Shown one piece after another: positions 1 to 46,847 of a DNA stretch of 64,000 nucleotides. The stretch lies in assembly GCA_030704615.1 (NCBI GenBank), contig CM060733.1, positions 28,396,001 to 28,460,000 of the forward strand, written 5' to 3'. The notes beneath the pieces were generated by a model that saw only the letters and a list, made by a program, of their open reading frames with translations, was not told the origin of the DNA and ran no database searches. A program made the translations under genes and the position numbers. The number at the start of each line of letters is the position of its first letter. The stretch's first letter is position 1. Source of the stretch: Takakia lepidozioides (taxonomy: Eukaryota > Plantae > Bryophyta).

Positions 1-1300
1 GACCCTCTGTAACCTCTGTAACACCGCAGAGTGTCACCCTCACCCATATGTAACCCTCATTCCATGTAACCCTCTCTGACCCTCTGTAACCCTCTATAAT
101 CCATGTAACCCTCTGTGACCCTCTATATCCCTCACCATGTGTAACCCTTACCACCACGTAACTCTCTGTAACACTGCAGAGTGTCACCCTCGCCACCATG
201 TAACCCTCCGTAACCCTCACAAACCCTCTGTGACACCGCAGAGTGTTACCCTCATCGCCATGTAACCCTCACTCCATGTAACCCTCTGTGACCCTCTGTG
301 GCTCTGTAACCCATGTAACCCTCTGTAACACCGCAGAGTGTCACCCTCACCCCTTATGTAACCCTCACTCCATGTAACCCTCTGTAACCCTTTGTAACCC
401 TCACCACCATGTAACCCTCTATAACACCGCAGAGTGTCATCCTCACCCCTATGTACATGTAACCCTCTGTGACCCTCTATAACCCTCACCAGGTGTAACC
501 CTCACCACCATGTAACCCTCTGTAACCCATGTAACGCAGAGTGTCACCCCCATCCCTATGCATCCCTCACTCCTTGTAACCCTTTGTAACCCTCTGTGAC
601 CCTCTGTAACCCGTGTAACCCTCTGTGACCCTCTGTAACCCATATAACCCTCTATAACCCTCACCAGGTATAACCCTCACTCCATATAACCCTCTCTGAC
701 CCTCTGTAACCCATGTAACCCTCTGTGACCCTCTATAACCCTCACTAGGTGTAACCTTCATCACCATGTAACCCTCTGTAACACCGCAGAGTGTCACCCT
801 CACCCCTATGTAACCTCACTCCATGTAACCCTCTGTGACCCTCTGTAACCCATGTAACCCTCTCTGACCCTCTGTAACCCTCACCACCATGTAACCCTCC
901 CATGTAACCCTCTGTCACCCTCTGTAACCCATGTAACCCCATGACCCTCTGTAACCTTTTGTAACCCATGTAACCATCTGTTACTCCGCGGGGTGTAACC
1001 CTCACTCCATGTTATCCTGCATCGTGTAACCCCAATGCAAGCTTGTATCATGTTATCCCATGTACCCCTCTCCGTGTAACTCCAGTTCCTCGTGTAACCC
1101 CATCATCCTTGTAACCCTTTGCACGTCAGCCCTTGTAGCTCCGCCTCGTGTAACCCTCATTGTGTAACTCTCACATTGTAACCCCACTATGTAACCCCGA
1201 TACTGTATCAATCCCCTCCGTGTAACCCCCGATTATGTCACTCCTAGCTTGTGTCACCCCGGATCCTTTATCCCCAACGCATGTCACCCCTGTTCGTGTA
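1..1300 (-). repeat. Left inverted arm: GGGTTAC(A)/GGTGACAC minisatellite
   Basis: Dense gtaaccc/gtcaccc units (tgtaaccctc, catgtaaccc, caccgcagagtgtcaccctc) that degrade towards ~1300. Confidence 0.95.
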
Positions 1301-2071
1301 GCCCCTTGGTGCCCAACAAAAATTGGCGGGCTCCAAGAGGTGTTAGATATTTTGAATTCAAACCTGGGTTACACGATTCGGTGACATCAAAACCCACGTG
1401 TAATTCCATCATCGCTCGTCATTTTCACCAAGTGCATAGACGTCGTGCAGTCCCGAGGGCTCCGCTGCATTGCCTGCGTGTGTTCTGCGATTTGTACTGT
1501 ACTGGTGGTACTGTTGCCGCTAATGGCATGTGCTGCCGCGAAGGTGCTAGACGAGGAACGCAAAGCAGCATTGGAATCAAATGGTTTGAAAGATGAGGCG
1601 GGAGAACTCTGTCATTTGCAGCATTTGGTATCTCATTTGAAATGTATCCTACAGCTGCCCATAGACGGGCTTTTCAATCACACAAACCTCCGTTGGATAC
1701 GCCACGTTTCCCAGGGAAAAGGGAAACGGATATCCATCGAAGTAGCTGTCGTTCCATGGTCTCGCATTCCTGATTTTCTGGAGGGAGAAAGGAGTAGAGT
1801 GGATGAGAAGACCCAATTTTATGTTCAAGATCGAAGGTACCGTGAGTTGCTAGATCTGACAACACCGGGTGCAAACAGTTATCGTCAGTGGCATAAGTAA
1901 GTCACTTACGAGGGTTGCATAACATTCCCAGCCCCACTTCTTTCTGCTGGCCTAGTTAAGAGAAAACAAATATTCGACACTTCACTGCCGGATCAGCCTG
2001 CCGACTACGGTAGATAGACTTGATATTACAGTCTTAAAATTTGCAAAGCGAACATAGTTACCATCATATTG

Positions 2072-2705
2072 GGAAGATAATAGGAATAATGTAAGAACTT
2101 AATGCACACGTGCAACCTCTGACAGGATGGTATGCCAGTTTCCGGCATGTCAATTCTTCCCCGCCTTCTCTTGAGAATGACATGGAACTGAAGGAGTGTA
2201 AACTCCACTTGGGGTTACATTGGATTACACGACGAGGTGTATAACTCCACTTGGGGTTACATTGGGTTACACAACAAGGTGTGTAACTCCACTTGGGGTT
2301 ACACAAAATGGAGTGTAACTCCACTCGGTGTAACTCACACTTGGTCTCGAAATTTGACCAAGTCCAAATTTGGTTAAGTATAAAATGGACTAACCAGAGT
2401 TACATGAAGAGCCAGGGTTACAAAAGGTTACACCAACCGGGGTCACACTACAAGAGTGTCCCATCAAGAATCAAACCTCGATCCTCACCGCTTGCATTGC
2501 TATCACCTTACCCTCACGCTACCCACCACAATTTGCAACCTACTTGGATTCTTAAGTTTTTATAATAGTGAAACCAAGGTAAGAGGGGGTGGGGCGGATT
2601 TGACAGGGGCCCCGCCGGAGGAGCCCAGGCTGCCGGAATCCGCGGCGAAAGTACCGTCAGATCACACGCGTCCATTAAGTTCTTACTTTATTCCTATTGT
2701 CTTCC
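2072..2705 (+). mobile_element. MULE-type MITE with 33-bp TIRs and 9-bp TSD
   Basis: TIR GGAAGATAATAGGAATAATGTAAGAACTTAATG at 2072, with a near reverse complement ending at 2705. Flanks are ATCATATTG (2063-2071) and ATTATATTG (2706-2714). Internal GGGTTAC repeats. Confidence 0.9.
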
Positions 2706-3139
2706 ATTATATTGTCGGGGACTGTTTATTATATTTAGTTCCCTTCAAGTTTATCCCTACAATTCTATTATATTCAGTTCCTTCAGATTTATCCTTCAAT
2801 TCTATTATATTCGTTTCTCTCATTTTTATCATAATGATCGACTTCCATTATATTCATTTCCTTTCAGTTTTATCACTTTAAATTCCATTATATTCAGTTC
2901 TCTTTAGACTCTTTATCCTCTAGTTCCACATTCAATTTATCTTTTCGCATTTGTTCCTTGCATTCAATTCATATCAGGACAGCCATCACTAGCATTAGGG
3001 TGGAGCCAGTACTCGACTAGCTACTTGTTAATTTCAAGAGCAACATGGCTTCCATCCCCTTTCATTTAAAAATAAAATAAAATAAAAATAAAAATATATT
3101 CCTAAGAGGAGTTACATAAGACGCAGACCCAAGCCTACA

Positions 3140-3382
3140 TTAGCCACCCATGAAGAATCAAACCTGGTACCTTGCCACCTACACACCTTACGAGTTCACA
3201 ATCTGCAACATTATGAAGAAGTATTTAATAGCGATCCGTGGTAAAAGGGTAAGAGGGGGTGGAGAGGATTTGGAATGCGGGACCTGCCGAAACTGCTAAT
3301 GCTACATGAATCCGGCAAAATGACCATTGGATCGCAAGCAAGCCGAGTGCATTAAGTTCTTACATTATTCCTATTGTTTTCC
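3140..3382 (+). mobile_element. Diverged right end of a related MITE
   Basis: Right TIR cattaagttcttacattattcctattgttttcc at 3350-3382, preceded by sequence resembling 2460-2670. No matching left TIR. Confidence 0.7.
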
Positions 3383-6300
3383 ATAAATAATTGATTTCCA
3401 ACCTCTAAGGCGTTTTACATACGATACCATTGGAAAAGATGGAAAAAAATAACCTCTTGAAGCCATGAAGCGAAGGGGCCACTACCTACCCGGACTCTCC
3501 GGACTCTCCACACACTAAAAAGGTCCAAGGTGGAAGAACAGCCACAAGTAAAAGTAAGGAACGAGCAAAGAGTGTTGCTTCGAACATCCCCACCCTACAG
3601 TGAACCCAACACGCCAACGGAACTTTCAGGGTATGTGGGCGGGAAAACGTCCACACCCTTGCACTGAACCCTATATCCCACAAAAATTCGGGCACTGAAT
3701 ATCTCTCCGTGCCCCCTGTGAAGCCTTAAAACAAGCCTGAAGCATATACTCATTGTCTCTCAAGAAACAAGAAGCAATGCAACATTTGGGACCAACGAAA
3801 ATAAGGTATTCGTGTCACGCTTTACCTTTCATTGCATTCTGAAATGTGAGTGCCATGCAATTGTTGCCAATATTATAACACTCACCTTTATTCATTTTGT
3901 ACCATTGCGACATTGCAGTTCCCAATGTATACCATGATGGTGTTCGACGAATGGCTCAACGGCATACCTGTTGCTTATATTATATCAGCGAGAAACAAAA
4001 CGACTGACCTGAGCCCCTGGATGAAACGTCTTCGCGACCGACTTCTTCAGAGCAAACCAGATTGGAGGCCAAATGCTTTTATTGTCGACGATGCAGACGC
4101 ATAAATCAATGCTATCAGGTACATGGCTAGAAGTTACAATGTTCTGAGTCACACAATAATTTACACTACAAGTTGCATGCATGAGGGGTTTCATGGATCG
4201 GGCTACACTGCTGCTAGTTACACTGAGAATCACAGTAAGAGTTAAACTGCCAGTTACACGAGGGGGTGCATTGCTGCCTGTAACACTTGGAGTTACACTG
4301 TCAGTTGCTTGAGGGGTTACATGGATTGGGTTGCAGTGCTGTCTGTTACACTGAGGGTTACACTATCAGTTAGACAGATGGTTATACTGCCTTGAGTTGG
4401 ACGGAGGGTTACACTGCTGTGAGTTAGACCGAGGGTTACATTGCTATGAGGTAGACAGAGGGTTACACTGCGAGTTACATTGGGAGTTACACGGCGTGTC
4501 ATCCGCAGTCCTGCATGGATTAGGTTGCACTGCTATAGCCTGTGAGTTACACTGGGAGCATCGCAGAGGGTTGTATGGGTTGGGTCGCTCTGAGAGTTAC
4601 ACGGTGTAACATGGATTGCGTTACAGCACTGCGAGAGGTTATATGTGTTGGGTTACACTGATAGTTACATGACCAGATGCACGAGGGGTTACATGAGTCA
4701 CACTACTAAGAGTGACACTTTGAAGAGTTACACTGCGAAGAGTTACACTTCTAGGAGTTACACTGACAAGAGTTACATTGATGGATTGGGTGGCATTTGA
4801 TGTGTGTGCGTGCAGGGAATCGTTTGGGGACGTAGCGATATTTCTATGCCTTTGGCATGTTCGCGCGCGCTTGGCTGAAACATTCGTGGCGTAAGATGCC
4901 CGATCCATACACTCGCAATGCTGTTTTGAAACAGCTTGGCGACGTAATGTACGGCATTAACGCCTGTGTGGGAGTCACCCCAGAAGAGTGGGCGCTGGAG
5001 CGACTGGAAGATTTGAATTATTTCTATCCGCTTGCGCGTGACTTCCTACATTACATCAGAATGGAATGGGTCCCAAAACTGAGCATGTGGATCACGGGGG
5101 CTCGTTATATTCCCCACGCAAGTCAGGATACTAATGCCGCAATTGAATCTTGGCACGGAAATTTGAAGGCTCGTTTACGCTCGGGAAAGCAAAGGCTTGA
5201 TGGCAGGAGAATCGATTGGCTGATCAGCGAACTCGTGGGTCCTGTTCTAACCCACTATTGGTATAGAGATAACTTGAAATCGAAAGGCTTCAAAAGGAAT
5301 GTACGACAGGAGGAATTTATCAGTAATGTTGTTTGGACTGCAAGGGAGATCCCTGATGTCAATGTTCATTTGCCCACTGTTCCTGGTCATCCGGCGATTG
5401 TGGATAGTGTTCAAACGGCCGGTCGAAGCTACACAATCTATGCACCTGCGACCACCTGGGCTTGTTGCGATTGTCCATGGGCTTTGAAGGGTAACTTGTG
5501 CAAACATCAAATCCGCGTTCTTCAATTGATGAAGCCAAATCTGAAGGAAGGGCTTATTGTGAAGCTCTGTGGCACAAAGCTCGGGACCATTCATGGAGGT
5601 CTTCACATATTGATGAAATCGGAACTTCAGATATTGATGCAGAGGAGGAAGTTGTGAATCTAGCAGAGCCTACGGAGTGCTCAGCATCATCCCAGCGTGG
5701 TCGGCAGGAGCCATCGGATGTTTCATCAATTGAATCTGAGATGAAGTCCCTGTCGCTTCTTGGCAATGAGAGTGAAACAATGCGCAAACATCTGCTTGCC
5801 GAGCTTCGTTGTGTTCGTGGGAGGCTGTCCACTTTTACAAGTCAGAATCGACAAAGGTCTGTTGCACCCTCTTCAGGCAGTTCCATTCATAAAAAATGAT
5901 GATGGAAACAACATGTCCCTTGCCAGGAAAGTAGATTTTGAGACCGGGTTCCGTAGTAAGTGACATTGAGTCCATTGGCAATGACACTTATTTTGTGATC
6001 ACCAGGTTTAATATGAAGTACATGTCTGTTCATGGGTTGTTATTCACTTTGCCATTCCATCCACATTCAAGACCTATGTAACCCACTCAATGGGACACCC
6101 ATGGGCCGGGGTGACACACCGCAGGGTTACACGTCTGGGTTTTCATAACGTAACATAGCTCTACTTAGTGTAACTCGCATCTGTGGTACTCCACACAGTG
6201 TAACACAGATGAGTGTGAACCTCTTCAGTGTAACTCATTGTGGTGTAACTCCAAGTGTAACTGCAATGTAACTATCAACAGTGTAACCCAGTATGTAACC

Positions 6301-7360
6301 CCATAGAATATTGCTGTCAGTGGTGTAACTCTGAGAATTTAAAGTCGATGACTACAATGTGACTACAGGTCTGGGTTAGTCTGCCGGGTTACATGACCCT
6401 TCAATACAGAGTGGGAAGATGAAGTCGAGCACCTTTAGTCACCAACACTAGCCCCTATATGTGTAACCCCTCTATGTAACCCAATTTGTGTGTACCCATG
6501 TAACCCAATTTGTGTAACCCATGGACGTGTAATCCATGAGATAGATAATCATTCCGTTCAACCTATGTTATGGACCAGTGTAGCCCTCCGGAGTGTAACT
6601 TGTTGTTGTGTAACCCCAAGAAGTATGTATCCCGACCACATGTAACCCCCACTGATGTCACCCCATTGCATGTAACCCATTGTACAAATTGGGGTGCACG
6701 CTATAAACCCCGATGCTACATCACCCCATCCTATGTATCCCCACGACACATAGCCCTTGTATAGGCAACCCTGCCCACTTTCACTGTGCACAGTGTAACT
6801 TAGAACTGTGTAACCCTCTTGAGTGAGTGTAACCCAGAGTGTTGTAACTCCAAGAAGTATGTAGTCCGACCAGATGTTACCCCACACTATTGTGACCCCA
6901 TCGTATTTAACCCATTGTACATAGCCCTCATGTATGTAACCCCATGTAGTATAAATCTGAGAACTTCAGTGCACAAACACTTCAGTGCGAAAAAAAAAAA
7001 ATAAAAAAAAAAAATACAAATGCTTATAGTCAAGGTGGGGTTACATGCCACGAAACTATACTGTTTCAGCAACGTGACCCTGACATAGCCAGGAAGGCCC
7101 AACCATGTAACCCTGAGAGGCCCATTGCATGTAACCCCACGTTGTGAGACCCGGCACGGTGTAACCCATCACTTATGTGTGAACCCACAGAGTGTAAGCC
7201 CATTGCCCCAGGGCCCAAAGGTGTACCCAAGTACTTGTCTATGACTCCACTTCATGTAACCTTATAAGGTGTAACCCCATGTAAGCCCATTGCATGAAAC
7301 CCAAACTGTGAAGTGTACGAACAAACCACATAGAAGCAAAAATGCATCAAGAGACGCTAT

Positions 7361-10300
7361 TTATTTTTTTGGCCATCTGACCAAGTCTTTGTCCATCTCG
7401 TCACACAGCCAACTAATCATATGAGTACGGGAAGCTATCATGGTTGACTCGTTGAACCAACTTGCAGTAAACGCCCGCCTATGACGGTTCGATCTTCTGT
7501 GGTTTTCACATTGAACTTCCACTCCAAGTAAAATTGCACAAAACAAAGTGCATAAGCCGCACTCCCAACAGCTCCGTTGCTGGGGGACACTGGCCTCAAA
7601 CCATTCCATCCTCCATGACGTAACTGAAGTCATCAGATCCAGGCATGAAATCAAAGAACGCTATGGCAAAATTTTGCAAAATTCCTTCAATGAGTTTGGG
7701 TCGGGCAATGGTTTTATGGGAGTCCAAATGTACTATCCGACCTCGCGCTCTAAAAACAACAACACTCCAGTGATCACTGCAACACAAACAAACCGTTACG
7801 TCAGAATAGAAAAAAAATCTCCAATGAAACCCATTGTGGTGTAACCCTTTGTACTGTAACTCTAAACGGTGTACACAACTAGTCAGCAGTCACTAGTGCA
7901 ACTCAGTCTAGAATAGAGGAGTGTAACCCAACATGCTCAGTCAACGCTGAAATTACTTACTCGAAGACAATAGGGATGACAACCACGTCCACAAGATCTC
8001 GATTCTTTGTGAACACCATCCCTCGGCATCCTGAGTGTACCATTCTTGCACCAACCCGAATAGCGTCTGCAGATCGTTACCATTGGTACGCATGACATGC
8101 CATTGAAAAGGAGCACAGATGACAAACTCAGGTGCGATAGCCTTAACAATTTGGCCTCCAGAAGTTTGTTGTAACCCGAGAGCAATGCATCTGTGACAGT
8201 TGCTCTTATTTTATACATCGGCTCAAAATCTGTCTCTTCCAAGTAAAACTGTAACGGGCTAGAAGCCAGGAAGGCATCGCCATAATAAAACTTCACTTCG
8301 GGCGCCCCAGGAGGGTCCGACACCATTCTGAACTTTTCAAGTACCGTTGTTTTAGTCTGCACAACAAACCGCACATTACGAACATTACGATGCATCATAC
8401 AAGAGTTATAATCAATATTCAAAATCAAAGAGGATCAAAGTACAATGAGGTACCTCGAACGCTCCCGCAAGTGCTTGGCAAGGACCTCTTGCTGCTGGAC
8501 AACGTCAACCTCCGAGACCCCTGCACTTTTGCCTTTCGATTTGGTTCGCTGTTTTTTGGGTGCGACAAGAACATGTACTTCTTTGTCAGCGCTAGGGGGT
8601 TCAGCCAACCGCTTTCTTTGAGCAGGCGGCCGTTTTGACCTCCTGGGATTCTTGCAACCTTGACAATGCCGCCGGTAGGGGGAATTTCTGAGCCAGAGGT
8701 GCCTTGTTCTGAGTTTGCTGCAAGTGCTGAAGACTGACTGCACTCCCTCGTCTGAGACGTGCTGGGGAGGTGATGACCAAGGGCAGAAGTCACAGCTCAC
8801 CTCCTCGGTGCTACCCCTGTCAGTGTCACCCTTCTCTTCAGCTTCCTGCTCAGTGTCACTCTTCTCAGTGTCACCCTTCTCTTCGGCTACCTCCTTAGTG
8901 TCACGCATCTCAGTGTCACCCTTCTCTCTGGCTATCTTCTCAGTGTTTCTGGTCTCAGTGTCACCTTTCTCTTTGGCCGCATTATCAGTGTCACTCTTCG
9001 CAGTGTCACCCTTCTCATCGGGTTCCTTCCCAGTGTCACTCTGCTGAGTAACAATCTTATGTGTGTCACCCTTGGCAGTGTCACTCTTCTCAGTGTCACG
9101 ATGCTCCGCAACATCCTTCTCTTCGTGACTCTCCACAGTGAAACGCTTCTCAGTGTGACCCTGCTCTGTGTCACCCTTCCAACTGACAACCTCCTCGGTG
9201 ACACCCTTCCCCGTGTCACCCATGTCGATGTCACTCTTCTTTGCATCAAGTGCCATCCTTGATTGTGTCGCCCTTCTCCGCACCCTCCAAGACCATGTTG
9301 ACTAGCGGAAGAGTGTCATCCGTCGCGACTAGTGGCCGTGGCAAAAGAGTGTCACCTTCCACGACTAGTGGTAGTGGAATGTCATCTATGGCAGTGTTAC
9401 ACTCACGGACATCTGCCATGTGGGTTGGCTGTGGGGTGTCACCCCTATCAGTGTAACCCATGTCAATGTCACTCTCAACAGAAGTTGCAGTGTTCACGGT
9501 CAATGGTGTGTCACCCACGACAATGTCCTTCACGGCACTGTCAGCCACACCGGTATCCGCAGTGTCACCCTGAGGTGCAGTGTAACCCTCCTTCCCTGTT
9601 GCTCCTCTCTGCGCAGTGTCACCCTCAGGTGCAATGTAACCCTCGGTTTCAGGGCATCCTCCCCTTGCAGTGTCACCCTGCGCATCAATGTGACCCACGA
9701 AGGCCGGGTCATTCTGAGAGAGGTTGACCACATGATCCTGACAAATACTTACATTGCTGCATGGAGGTTTCAACCCAGCATCTCCAGATTCAAAGTCATA
9801 CACAGACTCTGGGTCAAGCGGGTCCCCAATTCTTCGATTAAGACCTCCAAAAGAAATGACTGGGGCTAAGGACAAAGAGGTTCGCACTTGGGTGTTCCAC
9901 CTTGATGTATCATCTTCAGTATCAGTATCAGAATTCACGGGCAAATCCCGCGTCAAGTCTGCTAGGTTCACCCCTAAATGCAGCTGGGTTGAGTACAATT
10001 TACCAACCTGCGACAAAGATACAACGGCAGATTGACTTGGAATGATGTCCTCGTCATGTACATCGTCGCTCTGCGGGGCGGAAATTGGCCCATCGCTCGT
10101 CTGCGCGCCCCCTGCGCCCTCTGTATCACATTGTGGAGGGGCCCCATACACAACTTCGTGAAGCTCACGTTGAGCCTCAAAAGGTTTTTGAACACATTGG
10201 CGACTTGATTGGTCATGAGCTCGGACTCATCTGCATCGGGGAAAAGACAAAGGTTTTTAGTCGTGGAACGAGGTTTTTGAAAGTGCAAGGGTTACACTGA

Positions 10301-12560
10301 CTAGGACAAGACAGTGGTTTGATGTGGGTTACACCACCCTGTTAGAGACAGTAGTTTGCAATGGGTTACACTACTGAGATTACACAACGAGAGGGTAACA
10401 AATCTAGGGTAGCACAGCGAGGGGTACCATTAGGGGTACACTGATTACATGGTTACATACTCCGAGGGTTACACTGATTACAGGGTTACACACAGCGAGG
10501 GTTACACTGAGTACAAGGTTCCACATAGCGAGGGTTACACTGATTACAGGATTACACACAAAGGGATTACACGACGAGAGGGGTGACAGTGGATGGAGTA
10601 ACACTTACAGAGATACCAAGGCACTACAGACCCAAGGTCTCTCATATACTGGATGCCCAAACGCGCATTGAAGTCCATTTCTGTTGGTGATTCGCTGAAG
10701 AGGCCACAACACCAAAGCTGGATAAACGATTCTCTCTGTTGGATCGCAAAGTGATGGGCGGCGCGACGACGGCTTGCCTTGCAAAACTGTATAGCTCCGT
10801 TGATCTTAATTGACCGGTCACCCCACTCTTCTGTACTCAAACTCGATCTTAAGTCCTCGAGCTCAGAATCCAAGGTCGCAATTCCGTCACCAGGTTGTGC
10901 AAAGTACATCAGACTAAAGCCGTAATACTCATCGACTAGGTCCTTCACCTTTGAGGCCGTAAGAGCACTTTCCAGAAGTTCAGTCGTGAACCCCAACCTG
11001 GGATGCGTTTGGGAAACTGACCTGCCATGATTTCTTACATCGTTGTGGGCCAGAATTCTCAAAAGGAGTGGTGGCGGTCCAATGTGCGGTTTGGTGAGAT
11101 TCTCCATTTGACTGATCAATCCTTCGGCAAAACCACGAGTGAATTCCAACGGATTTGGAACAACCAAACCTTTGATTCCATCTCCAGTAATAGTGATGAC
11201 AAGAGGATTTGAAGTTCTGGCATCGTCAAGGTCGGTATTGCCAACAGCTAGTTCGTCCATCCTGTCATCATCATGTGAGGCTTGGCTCTCTCGATGGACT
11301 CGTGTAAGTCTCCCACCTTTTTTCTTTTTCTGCTTTGGCATGTCAGGATGCCCAATGCTCTCTAAATACTCCTTCACCCGATTCAATTCCTCTATCATTA
11401 ACGGACCATGATCCGGCTGGGCTGTAAACGCCTTGTGGGCAGCAACAACACTGTCTATATCATCGCTTCTAAGATGATGTCGAGCTCCCTGTGCAATACA
11501 ACGTGAGGGGTTACACCAGAGAAAAGGGTTACAGCACGAGGGGTTACACATGAAAATGGGTTACAAAGAAGGTGGGCTACATGGAGTTACACAGAGGTGG
11601 TTTACACACCATAGGGATTTTTAAAAGGGGTCCTCTGTAGGTGGGTTACACTCTGGGTTACACGCCACAGGAGAGACAGGGGGGGTAACACAAAGGGTTA
11701 CACGGATAGACAACAACCCGAAATTTGAAAAACAGAGAAATGGCAGGGAATCCAACTTGATTGTCCCTCGATAGAACCCAACTTGATTTTGCAGCTGTCG
11801 CATGGACTGTGCCCTCGCCTCGCGCAACAAATTCTTGGAATGCTGGCCAAAACCCCTTCTCATTGACATTCAAAAATGGGAAATGAGGAATAAGGCCATG
11901 TGATAGCAGAAGGATTGAGCCTGGAGTTCGCTTTCGCAAGATGAACCTTGAGCTCTGGGTTCCCCGGTTTCCAATGTTGATTTTCTTTGCAATAAGGACA
12001 GGTAGAGGCGGGCTCAATCGCCGCTTATCTCTCTCGTTAGAAACCTGCCGAATAGAAGGACCAGGGACAGAAACAATAGGAGCACCAGAAGATGTAACCT
12101 CTGTAGCAGAAATAGCCGAAGAAGATACAACAGCAGGCACTTAAATAGGATCTGCAATCTCACCCAAAGCCACCATATTTTGCAGAATCCATGCATGATA
12201 TGCATCAACAGAAGAAGCTGGAACATAATTCATCACATTTTCAACAGCCATGGCATGCTTGAGCTCCGCATCAAGAAACGGTTTTGTTCCTTTCGGTCTG
12301 GCCATACATGCGGCCGTTCCATCAACAATATGCCGATTCAATCCGCTCTTATCTACCTTTACTGCCCCACAATAAGGACATTCGAACTTAGGCCGGCCCT
12401 TTGCTCCCTCCACCTTGGCCTCTCTACATCTGGTGTGGTAGTATGCGATCATTGTAGCATGCTCATGCTCAGTGTACCAGAAGCGAACTCGTTCGCCATC
12501 CCTTTTCAAGTGATCAAATGGAATAGTAGCCTCTCCAGGGAACAGATAACAATCAGCCAT
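7361..12560 (-). pseudogene. Transposon accessory gene: C2HC zinc finger + unknown domain + (K/E)GDT repeats + Ulp1/C48 SUMO-protease domain
   Basis: ATG at 12560 leads to FECPYCG...LNRHIVDGTAAC, with an in-frame TAA at 12141. Further exons at ~11490-10620, ~10290-8435 (frameshifted, GDT repeats), ~8357-7950 and ~7790-7361. The last carries HWSVVVF...HLDS and VPQQRSCWECG, the His/Asp/Gln/Cys motifs of C48 proteases, split by a frameshift. Confidence 0.75.
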
Positions 12561-13399
12561 GGCAAAAGAAAAAGCTGACAGAAGAGAAGAGAAGACCAAG
12601 ACCAAGACAAGACAAGACAAGACCAAGACCAAGACCAAGTGAATTCCGAAGAACGCACAACAGGGAGTACGCACAGCAAGGAGTGCAAAAAGAATAGGAA
12701 AGGCTGCGAGAAGGGAAAAACTGAACAATGATCAAAGAACGGAGAACGAAGCTAGCTAGATGTCACCCGTAAGGCATGTCGGTTAAGCGAAAGACGGCTG
12801 TTCATTAAAATCTGGCGGCTTGCAATCAATTATATCCGCACTGAATCACACGTGTATGAGTTGCAATCCCAGTGTCACCCGGAATAGCGGAGTGTAACCC
12901 GTAACCCTACACTTGTGAGCGCGACAAACCGGCCGTTACCCGCATGCCAGGCACGTCGAGTGTAACCCTCCGTCAGGTACCCACATATGATGTAACCCTC
13001 GTCACAACCTCATGTACCCCTAGTCTATGCGACTCCCAAACACAACATCGATGTAACCCTGTCATATCAAACCATTAGTATACAACCTCCAGGTAAACAT
13101 GGTCAATGTAACGCCCCACCCATGTAACCCTAGCCTATGTGGCTCCGCGAGCGCAACATCCACGTAACCCATCAAACATGTCAACCCCATCTAAACCTCC
13201 ATTGCTAAACCGTCTACCAAGCCACCATGTATTGAGAAAGAAAACACCGTGTAACCCCCTGTGTGTAACCATAGCACACGTGACGCAGTCATATAAACCA
13301 TCAGACATGTAACCGGTTGACAGTGCTTGCAAAACACGCATGATTCGATATATATTGCATCCATAATAGCGATGAGTAGGCTGCCCTGGCTGGTGTGTG

Positions 13400-13530
13400 A
13401 ACAAAAGATACACGAGAGGAGAGTGAATGGGCACCCCGTCAAATGAGCGGCTGCTTGCATGGCTAGACCGAAAGAAACAAAACCCTTTCCTAATGCGGAT
13501 CTCAGGAATACCATAGCCATCGGGGACGGT
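13400..13530 (+). pseudogene. Inverted degenerate copy of part of the zinc-finger exon
   Basis: Translates as VNGHPVK*AAACMARPKETKPFPNADLRNTIAI, compared with LNRHIVDGTAACMARPKGTKPFLDAELKHAMAV at ~12240-12345(-). Confidence 0.8.
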
Positions 13531-13849
13531 GACAAAACAACAAGAATGACATTGAGAAAGAAAAAAGAATAGAGACAACCGTATCAATCGTAGAGAAAAC
13601 CGTAGTAATAGATTTGACGGATCGCTGCGCGGAAAGCGTCGTCTTGTATGTTGCTGGGAGGACGATACTGAACTGAATGAACTACAAATCTTTCGCATTG
13701 ATGTGTGAAGCCGATTGGGCGCCATGGGAATTGCAGAAAGCTGATGCCCCAAAGTAAAAAAACGAGCGAGCTAGGAATTTGAAAAACGGATGGAGAGAGC
13801 AAATTAGGGTTTCGGCCTCTATCTCAACCTCCATTCGGCCGTCGGATAG

Positions 13850-15630
13850 TTTACATGTGTATGATGTACACGAGGCGGTGTTACAGAGGGTTACGTGGGT
13901 TACAGAGGGTCACAGAGGGTTACATGGGTTAAAGAGGGTCACAGAGGGTTACATGGAGTGAGGCTCACATATGGATGAGGGTGACACTCTGCGGTGTTAC
14001 AGAGGGTTACATGGTGGTGAGGGTTACACCTGGTGAGGGTTATAGAGGGTCACAGAGGGTTATATGTACATAGGGGTGAGGGTGACACTCTGCGGTGTTA
14101 CAGAGGGTTACATGGTGGTGAGGGTTACAAAAGGTCACAGAGGGTTACATGGTTTACAGAGGATCACAGAGGGTTACATGGATTACAAAGGGTTACATGG
14201 AGTGAGGGTTACATAAGGGGTGAGGGTGACACTCTGCGGTGTTATAAAGGGTTACATGGCTTACAGAGGGTTACAGTGGGTTACATGGGTTACAAAGGGT
14301 CACAGATGGTTACATGGGGATGAGGGTGAAACTCTGCACTGTCACAGAGGGTTACATGGAGTGAGGGTAACATGGGATGGGGGTGAAACTATGCGGTGTC
14401 GCAGAGGGTTACATGGGTTACGGAGGGTTACATGGTGGTGAGGGTGACACTCTGCGGTGTTACAGAGGGTTACATGGTGGTAATGGTTACACCTGGTGAG
14501 GGTTACATGGGTTACAGAGGGTCACAGAGGGTTATATGGAGTGAGGATTACATGGGGGTGAGGGTGACACTCTGCGGTGTTACAGAGGGTTACATGGTGG
14601 TGAGGGTTACAGAGGGTCAGAGAGGGTTACATGGAGTGAGGGTTACATAGGGGTGAGGGTGACACTCTGCGGTGTTACAGGGGGTTACATGGTGGTGAGG
14701 GTTACAAAGGGTCACAGAGGGTCACATGGAGTGAGGGTTACATGGAGTGAGGGTTACATGGAGTGAGGGTTACATAAGGGGTGAGGGTGACACTCTGTGT
14801 TGTTACAGAGGGTTACATGGGTTACAGAGCCACAGAGGATAACATAGCGTTACATGGAGTGAGGGTTACATGGGGATGAGGGTGACACTCTGCGGTGTCA
14901 TAGAGGGTTTGTAAGGGTTACAAAGGGTTACATGGTGGCGAGGGTGACACTCTGCGGTGTTACAGAGGGTTACATGGTGGTAAGGGTTACACCTGGTGAG
15001 GGATATAGAGGGTCACAGAGGGTTACATGGGTTACAGAGGGTTACATGGTGGTGAGGGTTACAGAGGGTCAGAGAGGGTTACATGGAGTGAGGGTTACAT
15101 ATGGGTGAGGGTGACACTCTGCGGTGTTACAGAGGGTTACATGGTGGTGAGGGTTACAAAGGGTCACAGAGGGTTACATGGGTTACAGAGGGTCACAGAG
15201 GATTACATGGGTTACAAAGGGTTACAGAGGGTTACATGGAGTGAGGGTTACACTCTGCGGTGTTACAGAGGGTTACATGGGTTACTGAGGGTTACATAGG
15301 GTTACATGGGTTGCAAAGTGTTACAGAGGGTTACATGTAGTGAGGGTTACATAGGGGTGGGGGTGACACTTTGCGGTGTTATAGAGGGTTATATGGGTTA
15401 CATGGAGTGAGGCTTACATAGGGGTGAGGGTGACACTCTGCGGTGTTACAGAGGGTTACATGGTGGTGAGGGTTACAGAGGGTCATGGGGTTTCATGGGG
15501 TTACATGGGTTACAGAGGGTTACATGGTGGTGTGGGTTACACTCGGCGGAGTTACAGAGCGTTACATGGGGGTGAGGGTTGAACCCGGGGCGGGGGTTAC
15601 ACGGGCTGACGTGCAGGGGGTTACAGGGAA
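13850..15630 (+). repeat. Right inverted arm: GGGTTAC(A)/GGTGACAC minisatellite
   Basis: Dense gggttacagagggttacatgg and gagggtgacactctgcggtgttac units; reverse complement of the 1-1300 array. Confidence 0.95.
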
Positions 15631-16060
15631 TTGGCGGACTGGTGTCGCAGAACGACGATGCAGGGGGCGACGACGCCGATGGGATGAGGGCGGGGGTGGG
15701 GAGAGATTGACCGAGCCCAGCCGGCTGCCTTTCGATGTCTGCCGGAGGCGAAGATCCGGCGGTACGGGGGATAGTGCCGGGGCTGCCTCGCCTCCCGCGC
15801 ACAAGTCCTCCTGCGGACCACCATGCTGCTCGGCCCTATGCGCCACGCGGGCACAAGTAGGGCCACACTCCTTGCTGGGACACTAGGGCCTTTGCTGCGG
15901 GACCGGTGCCCCATACACTCTGTCACAAGTATATGGCTCAATCTGAGGCCAACTTATTAGAATATATGACGCTTTTGCCATTCAGTGACGTCACTATATC
16001 ACGAGCGTACAAGTGTTTATTTTTCTGGTTTTACACGTGCGTATTAATATCGTTGATATA

Positions 16061-16830
16061 GGAAGATAATAGGAATAATGCAAGAACTTATTGTACGTGC
16101 AACCTCTCACATGATGGTACCCCGGTTTTGGGCATGTCAAATCTTCCCCACCCTCTGTTGAGGGTGACATGGAAATTGAAGGAGTGACAACTCCAATCGG
16201 GGTTACACTGGGTTACACGACGAGGTGTGTAACTCCACTTGGGGTTACATCGGGTTACACGACGAGGTGTGTAACTCCACTTGGGGTTACATCGGGTTAC
16301 ACATCGAGGTGTGTAACTCCACTTGGGGTTACACAGAATGGAGTGTAACTCCAGTCAGTGTAACCCACACTTGGTCTCAAAATTTGACTAAGTCCAAATG
16401 TGGCTAAGTATAAAATGGACCAACTAGAGTTACATGAGAAATCGAGGTTACAGAGGGTTACCCCAAGTGGAGGGTTACATCGACCGGGGTTATACCGAGT
16501 GGAGGGTTACATCGACCGGGGTTACACCGAGTGGAGGGTTACATCCATCGGGGTTACAGCAAGTGTAGGGGTTACACTGCCAAAACCTCCCATCAGAAAC
16601 TGAACCCAGAACATCGCCACCTACATTGCTATCACCTTACCATCACACTACCCACCACAACCTGCATCTCCCTCAGATTCATAAGTATTTAATAGTGAAA
16701 CCGAGATAATATGGGGTGAGGAGGATTTGACAGGAGCCCTGCCGGAGGAGCCCAGGTTGCCGGAGTCCGGCGAAAGTACTGTCAGATCACACGCGTCCAT
16801 TAAGTTCTTACATTATTCCTATTATCTTCC
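16061..16830 (+). mobile_element. 33-bp-TIR unit of the same MITE family, without TSD
   Basis: TIRs at 16061 and ending at 16830; collinear with 2072-2705. Flanks GTTGATATA and TCTTGGGCG do not match. Confidence 0.85.
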
Positions 16831-16939: not shown

Positions 16940-16972
16940 GGAAGATAATAGGAATAATGTAAGAACTTAATG
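16940..16972 (+). mobile_element. Solo 33-bp TIR upstream of the UGT gene
   Basis: Exact GGAAGATAATAGGAATAATGTAAGAACTTAATG followed by unrelated sequence. Confidence 0.8.
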
Positions 16973-17690
16973 CGAGCGCGTCAGGACTGTCCAGCCCTGA
17001 CACCTCCCTGTCTGCCATAACTTAGTGCCGAGGCCGGGCGGGCGCTCGCACGCGCGGGTTGAAGACATAATGGACGTGCCCCCAAAATAGACATAATAGA
17101 CAGATGGCTTGTATAACGTGGAGCCACCACAGCCATCCCGCGAAGCTTCTTCATGGCCCAGTGTAAAGTGGTGAAGTTCACGCGATACGTGAGTAAGCTT
17201 AACGGCCGTGAGCAGATTGCAGTAGGGGTGTCACTGTTCTCCACCACAACTTTTTGTCTGTTACGCACTCACATTTCTGTCGTCAGTGTACGTGGTCAAG
17301 CCTTCCTCAGAAGTTGTTTGAAATCACTATTTGTCTTCAAGCGACCGCAAGCTTCAAGCTGATCTTCTTACAGATAAACTGCATCAAGCTAGCTTCTTGC
17401 CTTCTCGCAATGTCTTGGTTGAATTTTGTCATATAGTAGGCTAGACATTCGAATCCTGGAGTTTTATTTTTATTTTTTTGCCTGGAGTTTGAGTGTGAGG
17501 TTGAGCCTATCATCTCCCTCACGTCATTGGACGTTGTTAACATCTCTCTCAAAATTCCCTCTCTTCCTGGGCTCCGTCTCTCAAAATTAGGCCCCGAATG
17601 ATAGTCAGCAGTCACTGTTTCTAGATTCAACTTGTTTGCACGGCGTATTGTTTGAGGACGCGTAAACTCCATCCCATCAGGTTCACACTA

Positions 17691-20600
17691 ATGGCCAATA
17701 CGTCGGCTCCGCATGGCAAGTCCCGCCCACATGTAGTCATAGTCCCTAGCCCCGGCTCTGGACACTCTACTCCCTTCGTACAATTTGCGAAGCTGCTATG
17801 CACATCCGGAATTACGCCCAGCTTCGTGAGCACAGACAATCATATTGCAAACCTCATTCAGGACAACCATGGAACTGCAGACTCCACATTTGACGACCTA
17901 GACCTGCGATTTGTGAGCCTGCAAGACGGCATAACTGGTCCAATGGCCTCCATATTTTCTGGGGAAGGGAAGGTGGTGGAGGAAGCAACACTGGCAAAGC
18001 TCCTGGAAGCTGTGATAGTGAATATGATGGAAACCACCACAGCGAGCTTCAAGAAAAATCAGCGATCGGTACCACCAGGTGGCAAGCCTTGCTGCATTCT
18101 GTCAGATATGTTCGTTTTGGGTTGGACTTCAAAGGTAGCCGAAAAGCTCGACATTCCAAGTCATGTCCTACTTACCTCGCCAGCGGCATTTTTATCCTTT
18201 CTGCTACAGGTGTGAATTCGCTTCTAGCTCTCTCGAATCTAACTATCTCGATCTGAATGATCCAAATCGGGAGTAGACATCTGCTCGAGCTGAAAACTTG
18301 ACAGACGTGGTGCCAGCAACTTTTGCATGATGAAGAAATGGTCATGGCAATGCGGGGTCTTATCATGTTCTCACGTTGATCTGAGAATGACCGCTTCAAT
18401 TCCAGTAACCTGAAATTCGGAAAGGAGAAGGAAACTTAGCGGGACAGGGGTATATCCTTGTCAATTACTAGAAATTTGACATTTTCTTGTGAAAGGAATT
18501 GTTAGCGGGGATGAGAGCGAAGGAGGGAGAAGAAACAAAACCAACTCATCTCTTGTATTGTCCATGGGTAAACAGCTCAAGTACAAAGAGAGAGATCTCG
18601 AGATAGGGAGGAACTCTACCGATTACTGTGCCATAATATTGCAAACATGTCCGTAGCTATCAGCAACTCTCTAGATAGGCTCTTCACCGGCAGTGCATGG
18701 AGTATATAAGGATGTTTAGCATGCAGGATACAACGTTTTCCTTTTCAGTAGCTGACATAAGTGTGAATGTGATGGCAGCTCAGAAGGCTCGTAGCCGAAG
18801 GGCTATTGCCTCCCAGCAATCAGTCGCCCATTTCGTGCATTCCTGGCCTGCCACCACTGAGCCCTGCAGATGTTCCGCAGGGTTTGGATAGAGGAAACGA
18901 TGACCCCATATTCATCTTTCTTCATCGCCATTATTTAGCTCTCACAGAGGCTTCAGTGTTTCTAATCAACTCTTTTCATGAGCTCGAAGCTAGGGTGTTT
19001 GATGCCCTGCAGACCCAAGTCATTGGCACCACGAGTGTGAAGGTCAGTCACTTTCCTTGGTTGTTGATTTTGGCTTTTCAAAATTGATGCTTGCACATGA
19101 TTGTGATTGCACGCAGGGTTATATTTCAAAATAAGTTTGTTCACATCTGGAGAATTGGATTGTCGGTGTTCATGTTTCTAGCTGGAGCAAATTCTGAGAA
19201 AAGTATTTCATGGGTGCCCGTCATTTCTAGCCAAACATGCCACATTGGCCAATTGGGTTTAGCTGCAATGCTGCAGTGGACTCACATACATTAATTACAT
19301 TTTGGTCCCAAGATCAACTCTTCCCAAAAAAAAGTAACTCTTGAAACAAGGGCATTCATATATCCCCTTCCCTTATTCACTAATCCTGATCATGTAAGCA
19401 TGTGAAGCTGCCCCTGTTAGCGGGGTTGAATTGTGGTTTAGGTCATTGTATCTGGTTTAGGAGGCACAGGGATGTCTCTCCAAAAGGGATTGCCAGGAAT
19501 TATTTGATACTCTCTCCGTTAATTGAGTTGACTTTGATAGGACTGCCTGGAGATGACTGAATATCACCACTTCCAGGAAGTTCCTGTGTTGGTAAGAACA
19601 AATACATTTCACAATGTTCGGTTGTCATTGCTTGGTACCTGGAATGAAAGGTTCAAATTCTTCTCATGTTGGATGCTCCATCCCAGGAGACAGGCTACAT
19701 TGTTTACTAGTTCTAAGTTGCAGGTGCTATTTGCAGGCTCGATCTATTTTGCCCATTGGTCCATTGCTTCTAACAGAACGGCAAGCCTTCGAAAGCCACA
19801 AAAAGTTCGCTCAAGACATTGTACAAGGAGAAGAAACTCAGAGTGACCCATGTTTGTTATGGTTAAACACCCAGGTTCCTTTTTCAGTTCTGTTCATTTC
19901 GTTTGGAAGTAAGCCAGAAAGGATGGCAGGACTGCAAATCCTTGAGCTGGCACAGGGGCTTGAGGCTAGCGAGCAACCTTTCTTGTGGGTACTACGGCAA
20001 CTTAATGTAGCACCACCCTCAGCTTCAGAGTTGCTGCCATCGGTATCTGAATTGCTCCCTCCAGGTGAGAATTGGCCCATAATCCTGGAGAGCGACTTAG
20101 AATGTTACATCTGATAAAGTCCTGAATAGCGACACAGGTTGATTATCAACCATGACGTGAAAGCATTGGTTGATGAGATGGGAGTCTATTGTACCATATG
20201 TATATTCTGATGCATGGCAGGTTTGTTATCCAGGATTTATGTGGCATCAAGGTTTTTTAGTAGGGCATGGATTAGCTCAGGAGGGATTGGCCTGAAATAA
20301 TGCCTCCAGGTTTTGAGGAGCGGGTGAAGGGCCGGGGTTTAATCTACACTGGTTGGGCACCCCAGCAGCAAATTCTTAGTCACCCAGCCACTGGTGGCTT
20401 CCTTACACACTGTGGCTGGAATTCTACACTGGAAAGTATCTGTGCAGGTGTCCCAATGCTCACGTGGCCAATGTGGGCAGAGCAGCATATGAATTCCAGG
20501 TTAGATTCATGTGCCTCTTGGCCAAAGCTTCAAAACTTCTGGTTTGTTTCAGTAACTGAGGAATGCACATTACCTTCCACCCTGTCCAGACAGAAAGATC

Positions 20601-23600
20601 ACGAGAAATCTAATGCATCCAAGGGACACCCAGAGGGCCCTGTGACAATAACTTTGGATCCTATGCCTGAAAACCTACAAGAGAGTGGAGAGAGAGTGGG
20701 AAGAGGGTGGCTGGGTATAGCACATTAGGTCAGTGTGGATTGCGAACTTATAGAGAGCAGCAGAAAGAAAGAAATGCTTGTTATTTATCTGCAACCCTTT
20801 CCGACTTGGTCTCCAAGTAACATCGGACAGTCACATTGCTATTGAGTGAGGATACAAGCTTGCTATCGCCTTTTTCATTCCTGTTACTTAGTGTGCAATG
20901 GAAGTTAAGAAGAAGCAGGTAAGCAGAGGTACAGAGAGTGAAGTCCTACACCTTCAACGCTTGAGGTACTGTTGCCTAAAGACAATGTGAGTATCCAGTT
21001 GTGCAGGAGAAAGCAACTGCAAGGCAAAGGGTGAATGATTCTCCCTGCTCTCGGCTCTTTGTACTTCAGGACCCAATCCGTCTCCATAGCCTTGAGCTTT
21101 GCTGTTCATAAAGGCAGAGCTGCGCGTAACAGCGGCCAGCCTAGCTTCAAAACTCCAATGAGTAACGACCCTGTTTTACCCGACAGCTTCACGTGGCTCT
21201 ATTCTCCCTTTGGCATCTCCCTATATTAAAGTATTATACACTTAGGGTTATTAGTCATTACTAACCCTAATTAGTGCACTGCTTAGGTTTAAATCTACCT
21301 CTTTAAAAGGGCCTTTTCCACGTCATGCTCTTTAAAAAAAATCTTAGTCCCTTAGCAGTTTACCTTATAATTGCTGCATCTTAGGGATGGCTAGGTTATG
21401 TCCTTTCTAATTATCTTAAAAGATATCTAGGACAAACCATACCAAAGGTTGTAGAGAGAGAATGTACTCATAAGACGTTGATTGCCGCAGCCTTGTGGCC
21501 ATTGACCCCGCGCCCAGTTTGAGCAGAAACCAAAGGGACAGAACCTACCTCTGTCAGGGGCTGACGTTGGTAGTAAGACTTACCTTTATACATAACCGAT
21601 TTTTAGAGCAGACTCGCTGACGTGGCGTGTTTCTACTGGATTTGAGGAGGGGTGCTGTATGTGGTATTCTACGACCTACTAGATTTTAATTACCTACGCG
21701 GCTCGGTAGGTCCTGGCTCCCTGCTAGCAGGGGCTCCTCTCGAATGCTACCTAAGTCCATAGAATTGATCCCGCTTTTCCAGATATCCTCTAGAAATCCC
21801 TTCACACAAGCATCGATCTGCTCTGTGTGATTTGCCCAAAAACTAGGCCTCAGAAGGTTGGTAAACAAAGGTATAGGCACAATTCCCTTGATAGATTTGA
21901 AGAGAGCGTCACTTTGGTGAGAGAACCCCGGACAGTGTATCAGAAAATGAATACTGTCTTCAGGTTGCCCACACAACGGGCAATTGCACTCTCCCTTTCC
22001 TCTCTGCTTCTGTTTGCTGTTCAAAGGTAGGCTTCCTGCCGTGAGTTTAAATTTCAGTCTAGTTCCGAGAGTGGGTAGTCCCTTGAGGTCATCCAAGATG
22101 TCCTCCCCCCATGTCACAGACTGGAAACAAGTTCAGGGAAGTGTTCTGCCTAACTTCATTTTCATCAGACAATTTCATGGCAACAGACATGGCTTTGGAG
22201 CCTCTAAGTCAGATTTATCCAGCAGGGTCAAGACTTGCGGATCCAGATCCAGGTTCTTGAGAATCTCTTCTACGCTCTTCTGCCAGGACTTCGCCTGTTT
22301 GACAGGGCAGTCCTGTTTCCAAGATATAGAGTCGATTAACTTAGGATATCTGGTGTTGGACATATGTTGCAGCTGACCCCACCATCTGACCTTGAATTCA
22401 TCTCGTCGGGAGCTGAAGGACGGAATGCCAAACTCACCCCGAACAGCCACATTGGCTGTTTTGGAGCATACTGACATACACTCCTTAGGCACCCCCACTT
22501 GAATGGATTCTAGAGACTTAGCCTGGTTGGAGTTAACAACCCATATTGCAGATCCGTACTCCAAGGCAGGTCTAATAACGCGACAAAGCATGGCTTTCTT
22601 AACCTCAGAGTTGACCCCTCTGCAGTGGAAAAATTTAGTGAGCCCCAGAACTTTGCCCTTGCCAGTTTGAACAACTTTCCGGATATGGGATGGCCCAGGT
22701 AAGTATAGAAAGGGAGGACCAGGATCTCTTGGCACTGCCACTTAAGATAACTCCTCTGTCGTTGAATGCTACCACTGCACATTTGCTGACGTTAGCCTCT
22801 AGCCCCCAAAGATCAAAGTGTCTCTTCGCGCAATCAAGCAACTCTTGGAGATTGGTTGGAGTCTTCCCTAAGCCTGCGAAGTCATCCGAGAGAGAGGGTG
22901 GCCAGGGTAAGTTATAGCACATTAGGTCAACTGAGGCCTGCGAACGTAAGAGGAAAGCAGCAGAAAGAAAGAAATGTTTGTTATAATGCTTCCCCTACCA
23001 CTTGTAGCCTTCCATGATGAAAACAGGTAATACAGAGTTCACCGACATTTAGTGGATGGAGAGGAAGGGGGCAGAACTGACCTCCCAAAGATTTTGGTCA
23101 ACCCACTGAAGGCAAAGGTTTGAACTTGTGGGTGTCCCTTCTGTTGACATGGTCCGAATGGAAAGCCTGGGCTTTGTTAGGGACTAGCAAATTCCTACAA
23201 GTATACTGTAGTGTTATTATTGACAGCTTATTCTGAACTCAAAATTGGTTTGGGTGAGCAAAAATGAACTCCAGATTTAATAAGGGAGAGAGAGAGTCAT
23301 GCCCCACTTGCTGCTGGGCTAATGTAGGTGGGATGTGATGTGACATGATTGGGGAATGAACGTTGGCTGGAGTGTTTGCTATTTAACAAAATTTTACCAA
23401 CTACTCATGTCATCAGAGTAAATGCACATACCCTATTCGCAGAGGGGAGCAGATATGAACTTCAAGCAGGAATGCAATTTTGGGATAGGAATGACGGTGT
23501 GAAGAAAGTAGACCTTTGTCAATTATGAAACCCAGTGTTGCATTGAAAGAACAAAACTGGAACTTTTTGACTGGTTTGATAATGCGCTTTCCTGTGCTGC

Positions 23601-30355: not shown

Positions 30356-30379
30356 CGAGGTTCCTGAACTATTTTAGGC

Positions 30380-46720: not shown

Positions 46721-46847
46721 TCATTTATTTATTTCGAAGCCCTGGTCATGAAATTTTAAATCAAGGAAAAATAATGTTTTGCGGGGAACCCCCCTACCTT
46801 CCATACCTCTAAAGGCAAGAGAGAGAGAGGGTATTTTCAACTACCCA

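Follow-up and report, generated by a model that had tools for sequence, protein, structure and literature searches.

A decayed foldback Mutator element of the moss Takakia lepidozioides carries a body-wide short motif and a zinc-finger accessory gene, a possible anti-silencing pair

The VANDAL elements of Arabidopsis and their VANC proteins form a known anti-silencing system (PMC5735166, PMC10398659). VANC genes bearing a Ulp1 domain (KIU/Kaonashi) have already been described (review, PMC13317346), so a Ulp1 fusion is not the novel part of the locus reported here. VANC is dicot-specific, and the moss element lies outside that range. An unrelated non-autonomous element, AT9TSD1, shares its motif with VANC6 and is the counterpart of a moss MITE described below. 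Transposases can also bind motifs of this kind: binding by the Muta1 transposase rises with the number of subterminal repeats (PMC5499845), and the AtMu1c transposase by itself binds its TIR motif as well as related MITEs, and demethylates them (bioRxiv 10.64898/2026.08.24.746577).

We analysed a window of 64,000 nucleotides of Takakia lepidozioides (contig CM060733.1, positions 28,396,001 to 28,460,000). The element enters the window from its left side and probably ends at ~15.9–16.05 kb. It is a decayed member of a foldback Mutator family that has multiple copies and belongs to an old moss clade, in which the transposase gene faces an accessory gene encoding a zinc finger and a helical domain X (ZnF-X). 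The features are as follows.

1–1320, minus strand: left foldback arm, a tandem array with outward-reading motif, truncated by the window start
1505–1896, plus strand: transposase exon 1, start approximate, matching relatives
2072–2703, plus strand: MITE copy 1, with motif and a 9-bp TSD (1 mismatch), inserted in the transposase gene
2704–3774, no strand: foreign DNA that contains half of an older MITE at ~3135–3385
3775–3805 and 3919–4118, plus strand: transposase exon pieces with the MULE domain and an in-frame stop
4119–4815, plus strand: transposase intron, motif-dense
4816–5960, plus strand: last transposase exon, with SWIM finger, frameshifted
5961–7360, minus strand: spacer between the convergent genes, motif-dense
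7361–7776, minus strand: accessory exon 5, frameshifted, with the His, Asp, Gln and Cys motifs of C48
7961–8356, minus strand: accessory exon 4, putative N-terminal part of the protease domain
8454–10230, minus strand: accessory exon 3, a low-complexity linker with Gly-Asp-Thr repeats from GGTGACAC at 8811–9700
10609–11488, minus strand: accessory exon 2, helical domain X
11757–12560, minus strand: accessory exon 1, encoding the ~120-aa C2HC zinc-finger module and the first part of domain X
12561–13860, minus strand: upstream region, motif-bearing, with part of the finger exon duplicated in inverted orientation at 13404–13521
13861–15630, plus strand: right foldback arm, a tandem array with outward-reading motif
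15631–15912, no strand: GC-rich motif-free block, candidate part of the terminal TIR, its end placed by analogy
16061–16830, plus strand: MITE copy 2, a separate element with the same motif and no matching target duplication
46084–46720: further MITE copy, motif-bearing, with 6 GGGTTACA

The sequence-only reading had let the element run from 1 to 16830, a span that had to be redrawn at both sides. Position 16830 is the end of a MITE and was rejected as the end of the element, and the left end falls outside the window. Since 16061–16830 and 2072–2703 are separate MITE copies, the element probably ends at ~15.9–16.05 kb, its start lying to the left of the window. Its arms are kilobase-scale inverted arrays. 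In Ceratodon, a relative has GC-rich TIRs of 300 bp, and two copies show an exact 9-bp TSD with the 300-bp TIR. The copy had been called broken, and it is: the transposase gene has an in-frame stop and a frameshift, the accessory gene a frameshift and a premature stop (12141–12143, in exon 1; the majority of reads lack this stop). Many Sphagnum copies of the family are heavily decayed. A comparison of methylation-type mutations gave 3, 3 and 3 changes, which are tiny counts, and a search of viral contigs gave no match.

Our analysis confirmed the convergent pair, a SWIM-type MULE transposase against an accessory gene with C2HC finger and C48 domain. By its predicted MULE DDE transposase and SWIM finger, the element belongs to the Mutator/MULE superfamily. 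The SWIM finger of the window ORF scores just below the curated cut-off, and the MULE domain (PF10551) is above cut-off in the relative L014, whose transposase is 49% identical to that of the window; the last exon is intact in another copy, P0009 (99%). In the relatives, the transposase N-terminus contains a conserved CxC..H..CH zinc module, for which we found no PDB or meaningful Pfam match and no known DNA-binding fold; the middle exon or exons carrying it were not found in the window copy.

The accessory protein is predicted to run from zinc finger through domain X and a repeat linker to a C48/Ulp1-type protease. That a zinc finger is joined to Ulp1 had been proposed from the letters; both parts were recovered piecewise, but the fusion itself is a splice model, searched exon by exon and not joined. 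Sequencing reads yielded no splice joints of this gene, and the sole RNA-like run examined was of a diverged relative. The 3' donor of exon 3 lies at 8454 or 8444. The C48 motifs (His-Asp-Cys triad and oxyanion Gln) were found as two pieces across the frameshift (E 0.011 and E 2e-5), and exon 4 searched alone gave no significant match. A profile of the relatives' protease matches SENP2 (E 3e-6) and, more weakly, NEDD8 and ubiquitin proteases, and Pfam C48 is above cut-off in the relative P0055. We thus predict a C48 (Ulp1/SENP) protease with its catalytic residues. In profile comparison the finger resembles DNA-binding C2H2 fingers (PRDM9, E 8e-10), and it is predicted to be of DNA-binding type. 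A single zinc finger recognises few bases, a point against the finger as the motif's binder.

Exon 2 gave no hit in a word-index search, and the ZnF-X family was reached only via a profile search. In an Atlas search domain X had no usable match and the finger retrieved only unnamed or C2H2 clusters. A first fold of the accessory protein (9 sequences) was poor. A second, of the relative P0015, was confident, from an alignment with some misplaced X fragments, and fold searches with it gave no match to known folds.

The 8-letter motif GGGTTACA occurs at 33 per kb in the left arm and 37 per kb in the right arm, 10 per kb in the transposase intron (where GTTACA reaches 34 per kb), 14 per kb in the spacer, 19 and 27 per kb in the accessory-gene introns and 4.6 per kb in the upstream region, against 0 copies in the 46.5 kb of remaining window DNA. 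Only 6 copies lie outside the element region, all inside the MITE at 46084–46720. These counts agree with the densities read by eye, and support a motif that is element-specific and spread over the entire element body. In internal non-coding DNA (arms and MITEs excluded) GTTACA occurs 83 times, versus a shuffle mean of 5.2 and maximum of 14; the ordinary exons of the element hold 3. The motif had been described as a pair of words, dense in non-coding DNA and sparse in most exons and host genes. This stands for GGGTTACA and GTTACA, but the GGTGACAC variant behaves differently: in internal non-coding DNA GTGACA shows no excess (8 versus 5.5 expected), and it is dense in the coding stretch 8811–9700 (23 versus 2.4 expected), where GGTGACAC spells the Gly-Asp-Thr repeats.

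Internal clusters are tandem arrays, and the window copy's ordinary exons are nearly motif-free. Both features would fit a neutral origin, in which function is confined to the arm copies or absent altogether, and internal copies are slippage or gene-conversion spill-over from the minisatellite arms. The clusters lie in both orientations, however, with unrelated repeat units, and in intact relatives a related motif of their own lies all over the body, not at the ends alone. The coating also extends over the whole body in relatives without long arm arrays, synonymous codon positions included. Motifs defined in non-coding DNA exceed synonymous shuffles in the transposase codons of L005, L007 and L094 (P 0.001–0.004, taking the better of two hexamers per relative), which slippage does not explain; L014, in the same comparison, shows no such enrichment. 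The core is also retained across very divergent families. We consider neutral spill-over quite unlikely, and body-wide motifs, transposase codons included, point to selected, putative binding sites.

Which protein would read them is a closer question. ZnF-X faces the transposase in Ceratodon, in Sphagnum samples and in other mosses, and the X and transposase trees are broadly congruent. These comparisons support a long-standing and constant association of the accessory gene with this transposase clade, and a recent capture was rejected. Relative to the transposase, ZnF-X has evolved ~3-fold faster (branch 2.9 versus 0.96), and it contains tandem peptide repeats.

The transposase itself could be the reader: arrays in the arms would load an oligomeric transposase, inward sites would activate the element, and the accessory protein would do other work (SUMO/NEDD8/ubiquitin processing or assistance in transposition). 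We regard this as a serious possibility, if short of even odds. Like classic transposase sites, the arm motifs all read outward, at 10-bp and 15–20-bp spacing, and the Muta1 and AtMu1c precedents (PMC5499845; bioRxiv 10.64898/2026.08.24.746577) show transposases binding motifs of their own elements. Motif class follows the transposase tree (GT[T/G]ACA clade, support 100/99), and elements sharing the GTTACA core have transposases 49% identical, while their ZnF modules are 19–24% identical (ZnF and X 11–24%). The conserved zinc module of the relatives speaks for the transposase, and its lack of a match to any known DNA-binding fold speaks against. Against the transposase, the Ceratodon TIRs hold few motif copies, which instead run through the body (2 per kb over the outermost 500 bp versus 3.1 in the body), and the MITE termini are unrelated to the presumed end of the window element. 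Since the X tree is broadly congruent with the transposase tree, motif tracking cannot separate the two proteins. An Arg at +3 of the finger helix is present in three GTTACA families and not in GTGACA or GGACAG families, with n tiny; L004, a ZnF-X-Ulp1 element with Arg at +3, lacks a clear motif on a contig that is mostly coding.

A host factor could bind instead, either telomere-repeat-binding proteins or a domesticated host ZnF-X acting as silencer. The arm consensus includes a telomere-like AGGGTTA, and conserved host ZnF-X genes exist in Takakia lepidozioides, Ceratodon, Physcomitrium and Sphagnum. Yet the words of related families (GTGACACTG of L007-type, ATGTTACA, and GGACAGG in Ceratodon) are non-telomeric, and the motif is absent from the window's host DNA, which leaves a host reader very improbable. 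Host-gene ZnF-X copies and a third finger ORF are located in motif-free DNA, so the finger is not always accompanied by sites, a point against the accessory finger as reader. A separate third ORF in the Ceratodon element is possibly a 2OG-Fe(II) dioxygenase-like gene, its motif seen by eye only; as it has no match in Pfam, PDB, PHROGs, NCBIfam or phages, this is a lead only.

The best explanation, to which we give a probability of roughly 0.4, is that the accessory zinc finger reads the body-wide motif and counteracts silencing in trans. The short motif would be a self-recognition site that multiplies through local tandem duplication and that selection maintains over the full length of the element. 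The accessory protein would be its most likely reader at body-wide sites: the zinc-finger module would bind clustered motifs, domain X would act to scaffold or recruit, and a C-terminal enzyme, where present, would alter local chromatin (a C48 protease in the window copy, a NIF phosphatase together with C48 in one relative, no such enzyme in others). Family members would thereby be kept open or transcribed in trans, VANC-like, with intact copies elsewhere supplying the protein and motif-bearing MITEs riding along. Motif enrichment was computed and gene anatomy observed; we infer the binding and all further steps. The proposal of an independent VANC analogue keeps its element-specific body-wide motif, its old and fast-evolving partner with a DNA-binding-type finger and its motif MITE, but loses deSUMOylase delivery as its core: the motif-coated L014, L094 and Ceratodon L005 have no detectable Ulp1, and we rejected Ulp1 as an essential component.

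If the accessory protein is the reader, VANC-style anti-silencing would have a convergent second origin beyond flowering plants, in a different protein family. The broader view, that mosses have their own VANC-unrelated, sequence-specific anti-silencing, in which ZnF-X accompanies one MULE clade across deep moss lineages, reads a slowly drifting xxxACA motif, works with swappable effectors (C48, NIF and possibly the Ceratodon dioxygenase-like gene) and appears to have entered host genes by domestication more than once, we put forward as doubtful but worth stating. If the transposase is the reader, the finding of transposases as activators extends to sites over the whole element. Under either reader, ZnF-X represents a domain family that has no name and whose host copies are conserved in mosses. 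Near-identical copies in Ceratodon purpureus make a tractable moss model, and families differing in motif and finger helix form a natural series from which a recognition code, and possibly a tool for epigenome editing, could be worked out.

Among known systems, Ulp1-carrying MULEs of Arabidopsis, melon, rice and grape likewise have a C48 protease domain as cargo, whereas the moss C48 is a very diverged, optional tail of the ZnF-X protein. The AtMu1 transposase and Spm TnpA, both sequence-specific activators (bioRxiv 10.64898/2026.08.24.746577), resemble our case in pairing an element-encoded protein with dispersed cognate motifs common to MITEs; AtMu1 sites, however, are TIR-confined and come with no accessory gene, and TnpA is transposase-derived, a link that ZnF-X does not show. 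Foldback MULEs such as Muta1 of Aedes (PMC5499845) share TIR arms of outward short tandem repeats and the 9-bp TSD seen in moss relatives, but the moss repeats continue into introns, spacer and coding linker, and a second large gene is present. From VANDALs, which are non-TIR, the moss element differs in its kilobase inverted arms (and its relatives in their TIRs), in a motif that also enters codons, and in an accessory protein made of a C2HC finger and an unclassified helical domain instead of DUF1985/DUF287. None of DUF1985, DUF287 and PMD was found by Pfam in 106 family members or in the window pieces, and fold searches gave no significant match; we rejected VANC homology of ZnF-X on these Pfam and general fold searches, whose comparisons held no VANC model. 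VANC binds its motif and causes sequence-specific hypomethylation; for the moss accessory protein both activities are putative. The likeness to VANDAL/VANC is nonetheless broad: a MULE transposase with a fast-evolving accessory protein bearing tandem peptide repeats, a short family-specific motif tandem-amplified in introns and other non-coding DNA, an optional Ulp1 domain on the accessory protein, and a motif common to unrelated non-autonomous elements with 9-bp TSDs.

We counted 182 copies of the main 8-letter motif, GGGTTACA (core GTTACA), in 1-16830; the rest of the window has 6, all of which fall within a separate short motif-bearing element (MITE) at 46084-46720. With arms and MITEs left out, introns, spacer and upstream regions together make up 4.3 kb and contain 83 GTTACA cores, against a shuffle mean of 5.2; the 5.1 kb of ordinary exons of the large Mutator (MULE) element hold 3. 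The motif is real, its enrichment greatly exceeds chance, and the density that the sequence-only reading had described in arms, introns, spacer and upstream DNA is borne out by counting. That reading had paired the motif with a variant, GGTGACAC (core GTGACA), and this half of the pair fell away: the variant shows no enrichment across the element's internal non-coding DNA and is dense within coding exon 8811-9700; of the 15 runs of codons for Gly-Asp-Thr there, 14 read as this variant. Motif copies in the arms are oriented outward throughout, and orientation alternates in the internal clusters. A second repeat family, of CACTTGG-rich 107-110 bp units (30374-33463, 40305-41137 and 45895-49117), is unrelated to the GTTACA motif.

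The stretch 1-16830 had also been taken for one element. Its last part, 16061-16830, proved to be a MITE, and the motif is the sole feature common to MITE and large element. Members of this MITE family in the window are:
2072-2703, copy with a 9-bp target duplication
3135-3385, older half MITE
16061-16830, copy with its own short TIRs (family length 630-770 bp)
16940-16973, solo terminus
46084-46720, copy inside an unrelated repeat
The left end of the large element is upstream of the window and its right end probably lies between about 15900 and 16060. Block 15631-15912, GC-rich and without the motif, resembles the 300-bp TIRs of a Ceratodon relative and, by this analogy, may be an end of the element. 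Other sequences of the window, at 17652-20728, 21686-22741 and 53829-54239, were recognised by eye as UDP-glycosyltransferase-like gene pieces and as LINE-like remnants, and by Pfam as an mTERF fragment.

The plus-strand gene encodes a SWIM-type MULE transposase. As had been read, this copy is broken (insertions, one stop, frameshifts, middle exons apparently lost); a second, 99% identical copy has an intact last exon. The minus-strand accessory gene has five exons, all bounded by GT-AG, with phases that are compatible on condition that the exon 3 donor is 8444. Searched individually, they encode, in order, a module with a C2HC finger, the helical domain X (together ZnF-X), a linker of low complexity and a protease of C48 type that has the His, Asp, Gln and Cys motifs. 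Zinc finger and Ulp1 motifs are both present, as proposed; their fusion is a splice model, because no splice joint or RNA run for this gene was found in the reads searched, and is backed by relatives with single ORFs spanning X and C48. One such ORF (P0049, L003 1727-4465) encodes a NIF (FCP1-like) phosphatase domain in addition to domain X and the C48 protease. Majority contigs of the accessory gene from a DNA run reach a depth of ~2,400 versus ~55 for rare contigs, which suggests tens of near-identical copies, read depth not being equal to copy number; majority contigs lack the stop at 12141-12143 and also differ at several frameshift positions. In a possible RNA run there were contigs from a relative of the accessory gene that has diverged (about 86%); they match 12176-12544 and 11327-11386 and hint at transcription of some ZnF-X family. 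Upstream of the gene, 13404-13521 is an inverted partial duplicate of the finger exon's tail (74% identity), which in a read-through transcript could form a hairpin.

A profile search yielded 157 relatives. Elsewhere in the window we found two homologues, the second followed by a further ORF:
55245-57416, intact intronless 723-aa ORF, surrounding DNA without the motif
61318-61707, third short ZnF-module ORF, no motifs nearby
63242-63745, PHD/RING-like ORF
The first, 40-49% identical to homologues including those of Ceratodon and Physcomitrium, belongs to a gene family conserved in mosses (Ceratodon, Physcomitrium, Sphagnum), and the other two ORFs are probably another element's remnant. Relatives with no transposase or motif nearby (L001, L009 and L010) look like host genes, and apparently share one intron position with the element's accessory gene. 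Others lie inside transposons with the same convergent gene layout, a linkage found across the clade:
Ceratodon element (L005), two copies, 14.8 kb, TIRs and exact 9-bp TSDs
L007, 11 kb element
L014 and L094, transposons
many decayed loci in Sphagnum-type samples
The tree of X broadly agrees with that of the transposase, so the partnership is old; in a quick, unrooted X tree, transposase-free copies are scattered over several positions, suggesting repeated domestication. For one relative, a confident structure model shows an all-helical domain in addition to the finger module, and a fold search with the model returned no match. The family and its moss clade appear undescribed.

The proposal that deSUMOylase activity is the core of the system did not survive this comparison. 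Ulp1 is undetectable in L014, L094 and the Ceratodon element, all of them motif-coated, and the protease is thus optional cargo. The Ceratodon element carries a third ORF (L005 13193-14887, minus strand; 565 codons, intronless, AT-rich at 31% GC), with one stop in the second copy. By eye it has an HxD..GG..H pattern resembling 2OG-Fe(II) dioxygenases, and it has no match in Pfam, PDB, PHROGs, NCBIfam or phages; fungal transposons carry TET/JBP cargo (PMC12730594).

Intact relatives have their own over-represented words spread over the element body: ATGTTACA (L012-L018, L094), CAGTGTTACA (L003), GTGACACTG (L007, L019), GGACAGG (Ceratodon, where its density is no higher at the ends than in the interior) and ATAACAC (L092). 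ACA is common to all, and the GT[T/G]ACA families form one clade (support 100/99) in a transposase tree of families with full transposase sequence. When words are defined in non-coding DNA alone, the transposase codons of three of the four relatives whose transposases are near-complete still contain more of them than synonymous shuffles do (P 0.001-0.004, better of two hexamers). This selection signal is the best evidence that the words are selected sites and not slippage debris; neutral spread of the motif fits less well than a reader encoded by the element and is unlikely. A host factor as reader, also a poorer fit, is slightly more doubtful still.

Motif enrichment, the selection signal in relatives, the anatomy of the genes and their linkage across the clade are observed; we infer that a protein binds the motif, which protein does so and with what consequences. 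Our favoured reading, with a probability of roughly 0.4, is that the accessory protein would bind sites across the element body and act in a VANC-like way. We favour it because intronic sites occur body-wide, because this protein evolves fast and has peptide repeats, because its finger is of a DNA-binding type (the profile match is to DNA-binding C2H2 fingers) and because a 9-bp-TSD MITE hitch-hikes, as AT9TSD1 does. Nearly as likely, the transposase reads the motif: the arms are typical subterminal arrays, the AtMu1c transposase alone binds and demethylates its own TIR and MITE motifs (bioRxiv 10.64898/2026.08.24.746577), and the GTTACA core is kept where transposases are 49% identical, fingers 19-24% and X domains 11-13%. 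Both proteins could bind.

The earlier suggestion of an independent VANC analogue stands in part. Judged by its layout, the large element would work like VANDAL/VANC elements in Arabidopsis, and the moss MITE shares its motif with a large element as AT9TSD1 does. However, the moss element is not a VANDAL/VANC member, because it has TIRs and no VANC domains (DUF1985 and DUF287 were in none of 106 family members). Nor is a targeting domain fused to Ulp1 a new idea, since it is described for KIU-type VANCs (reviewed in PMC13317346). What the present analysis newly contributes is the survey across mosses, the enrichment at codon level, the finding that Ulp1 is dispensable and the correction concerning the MITE.
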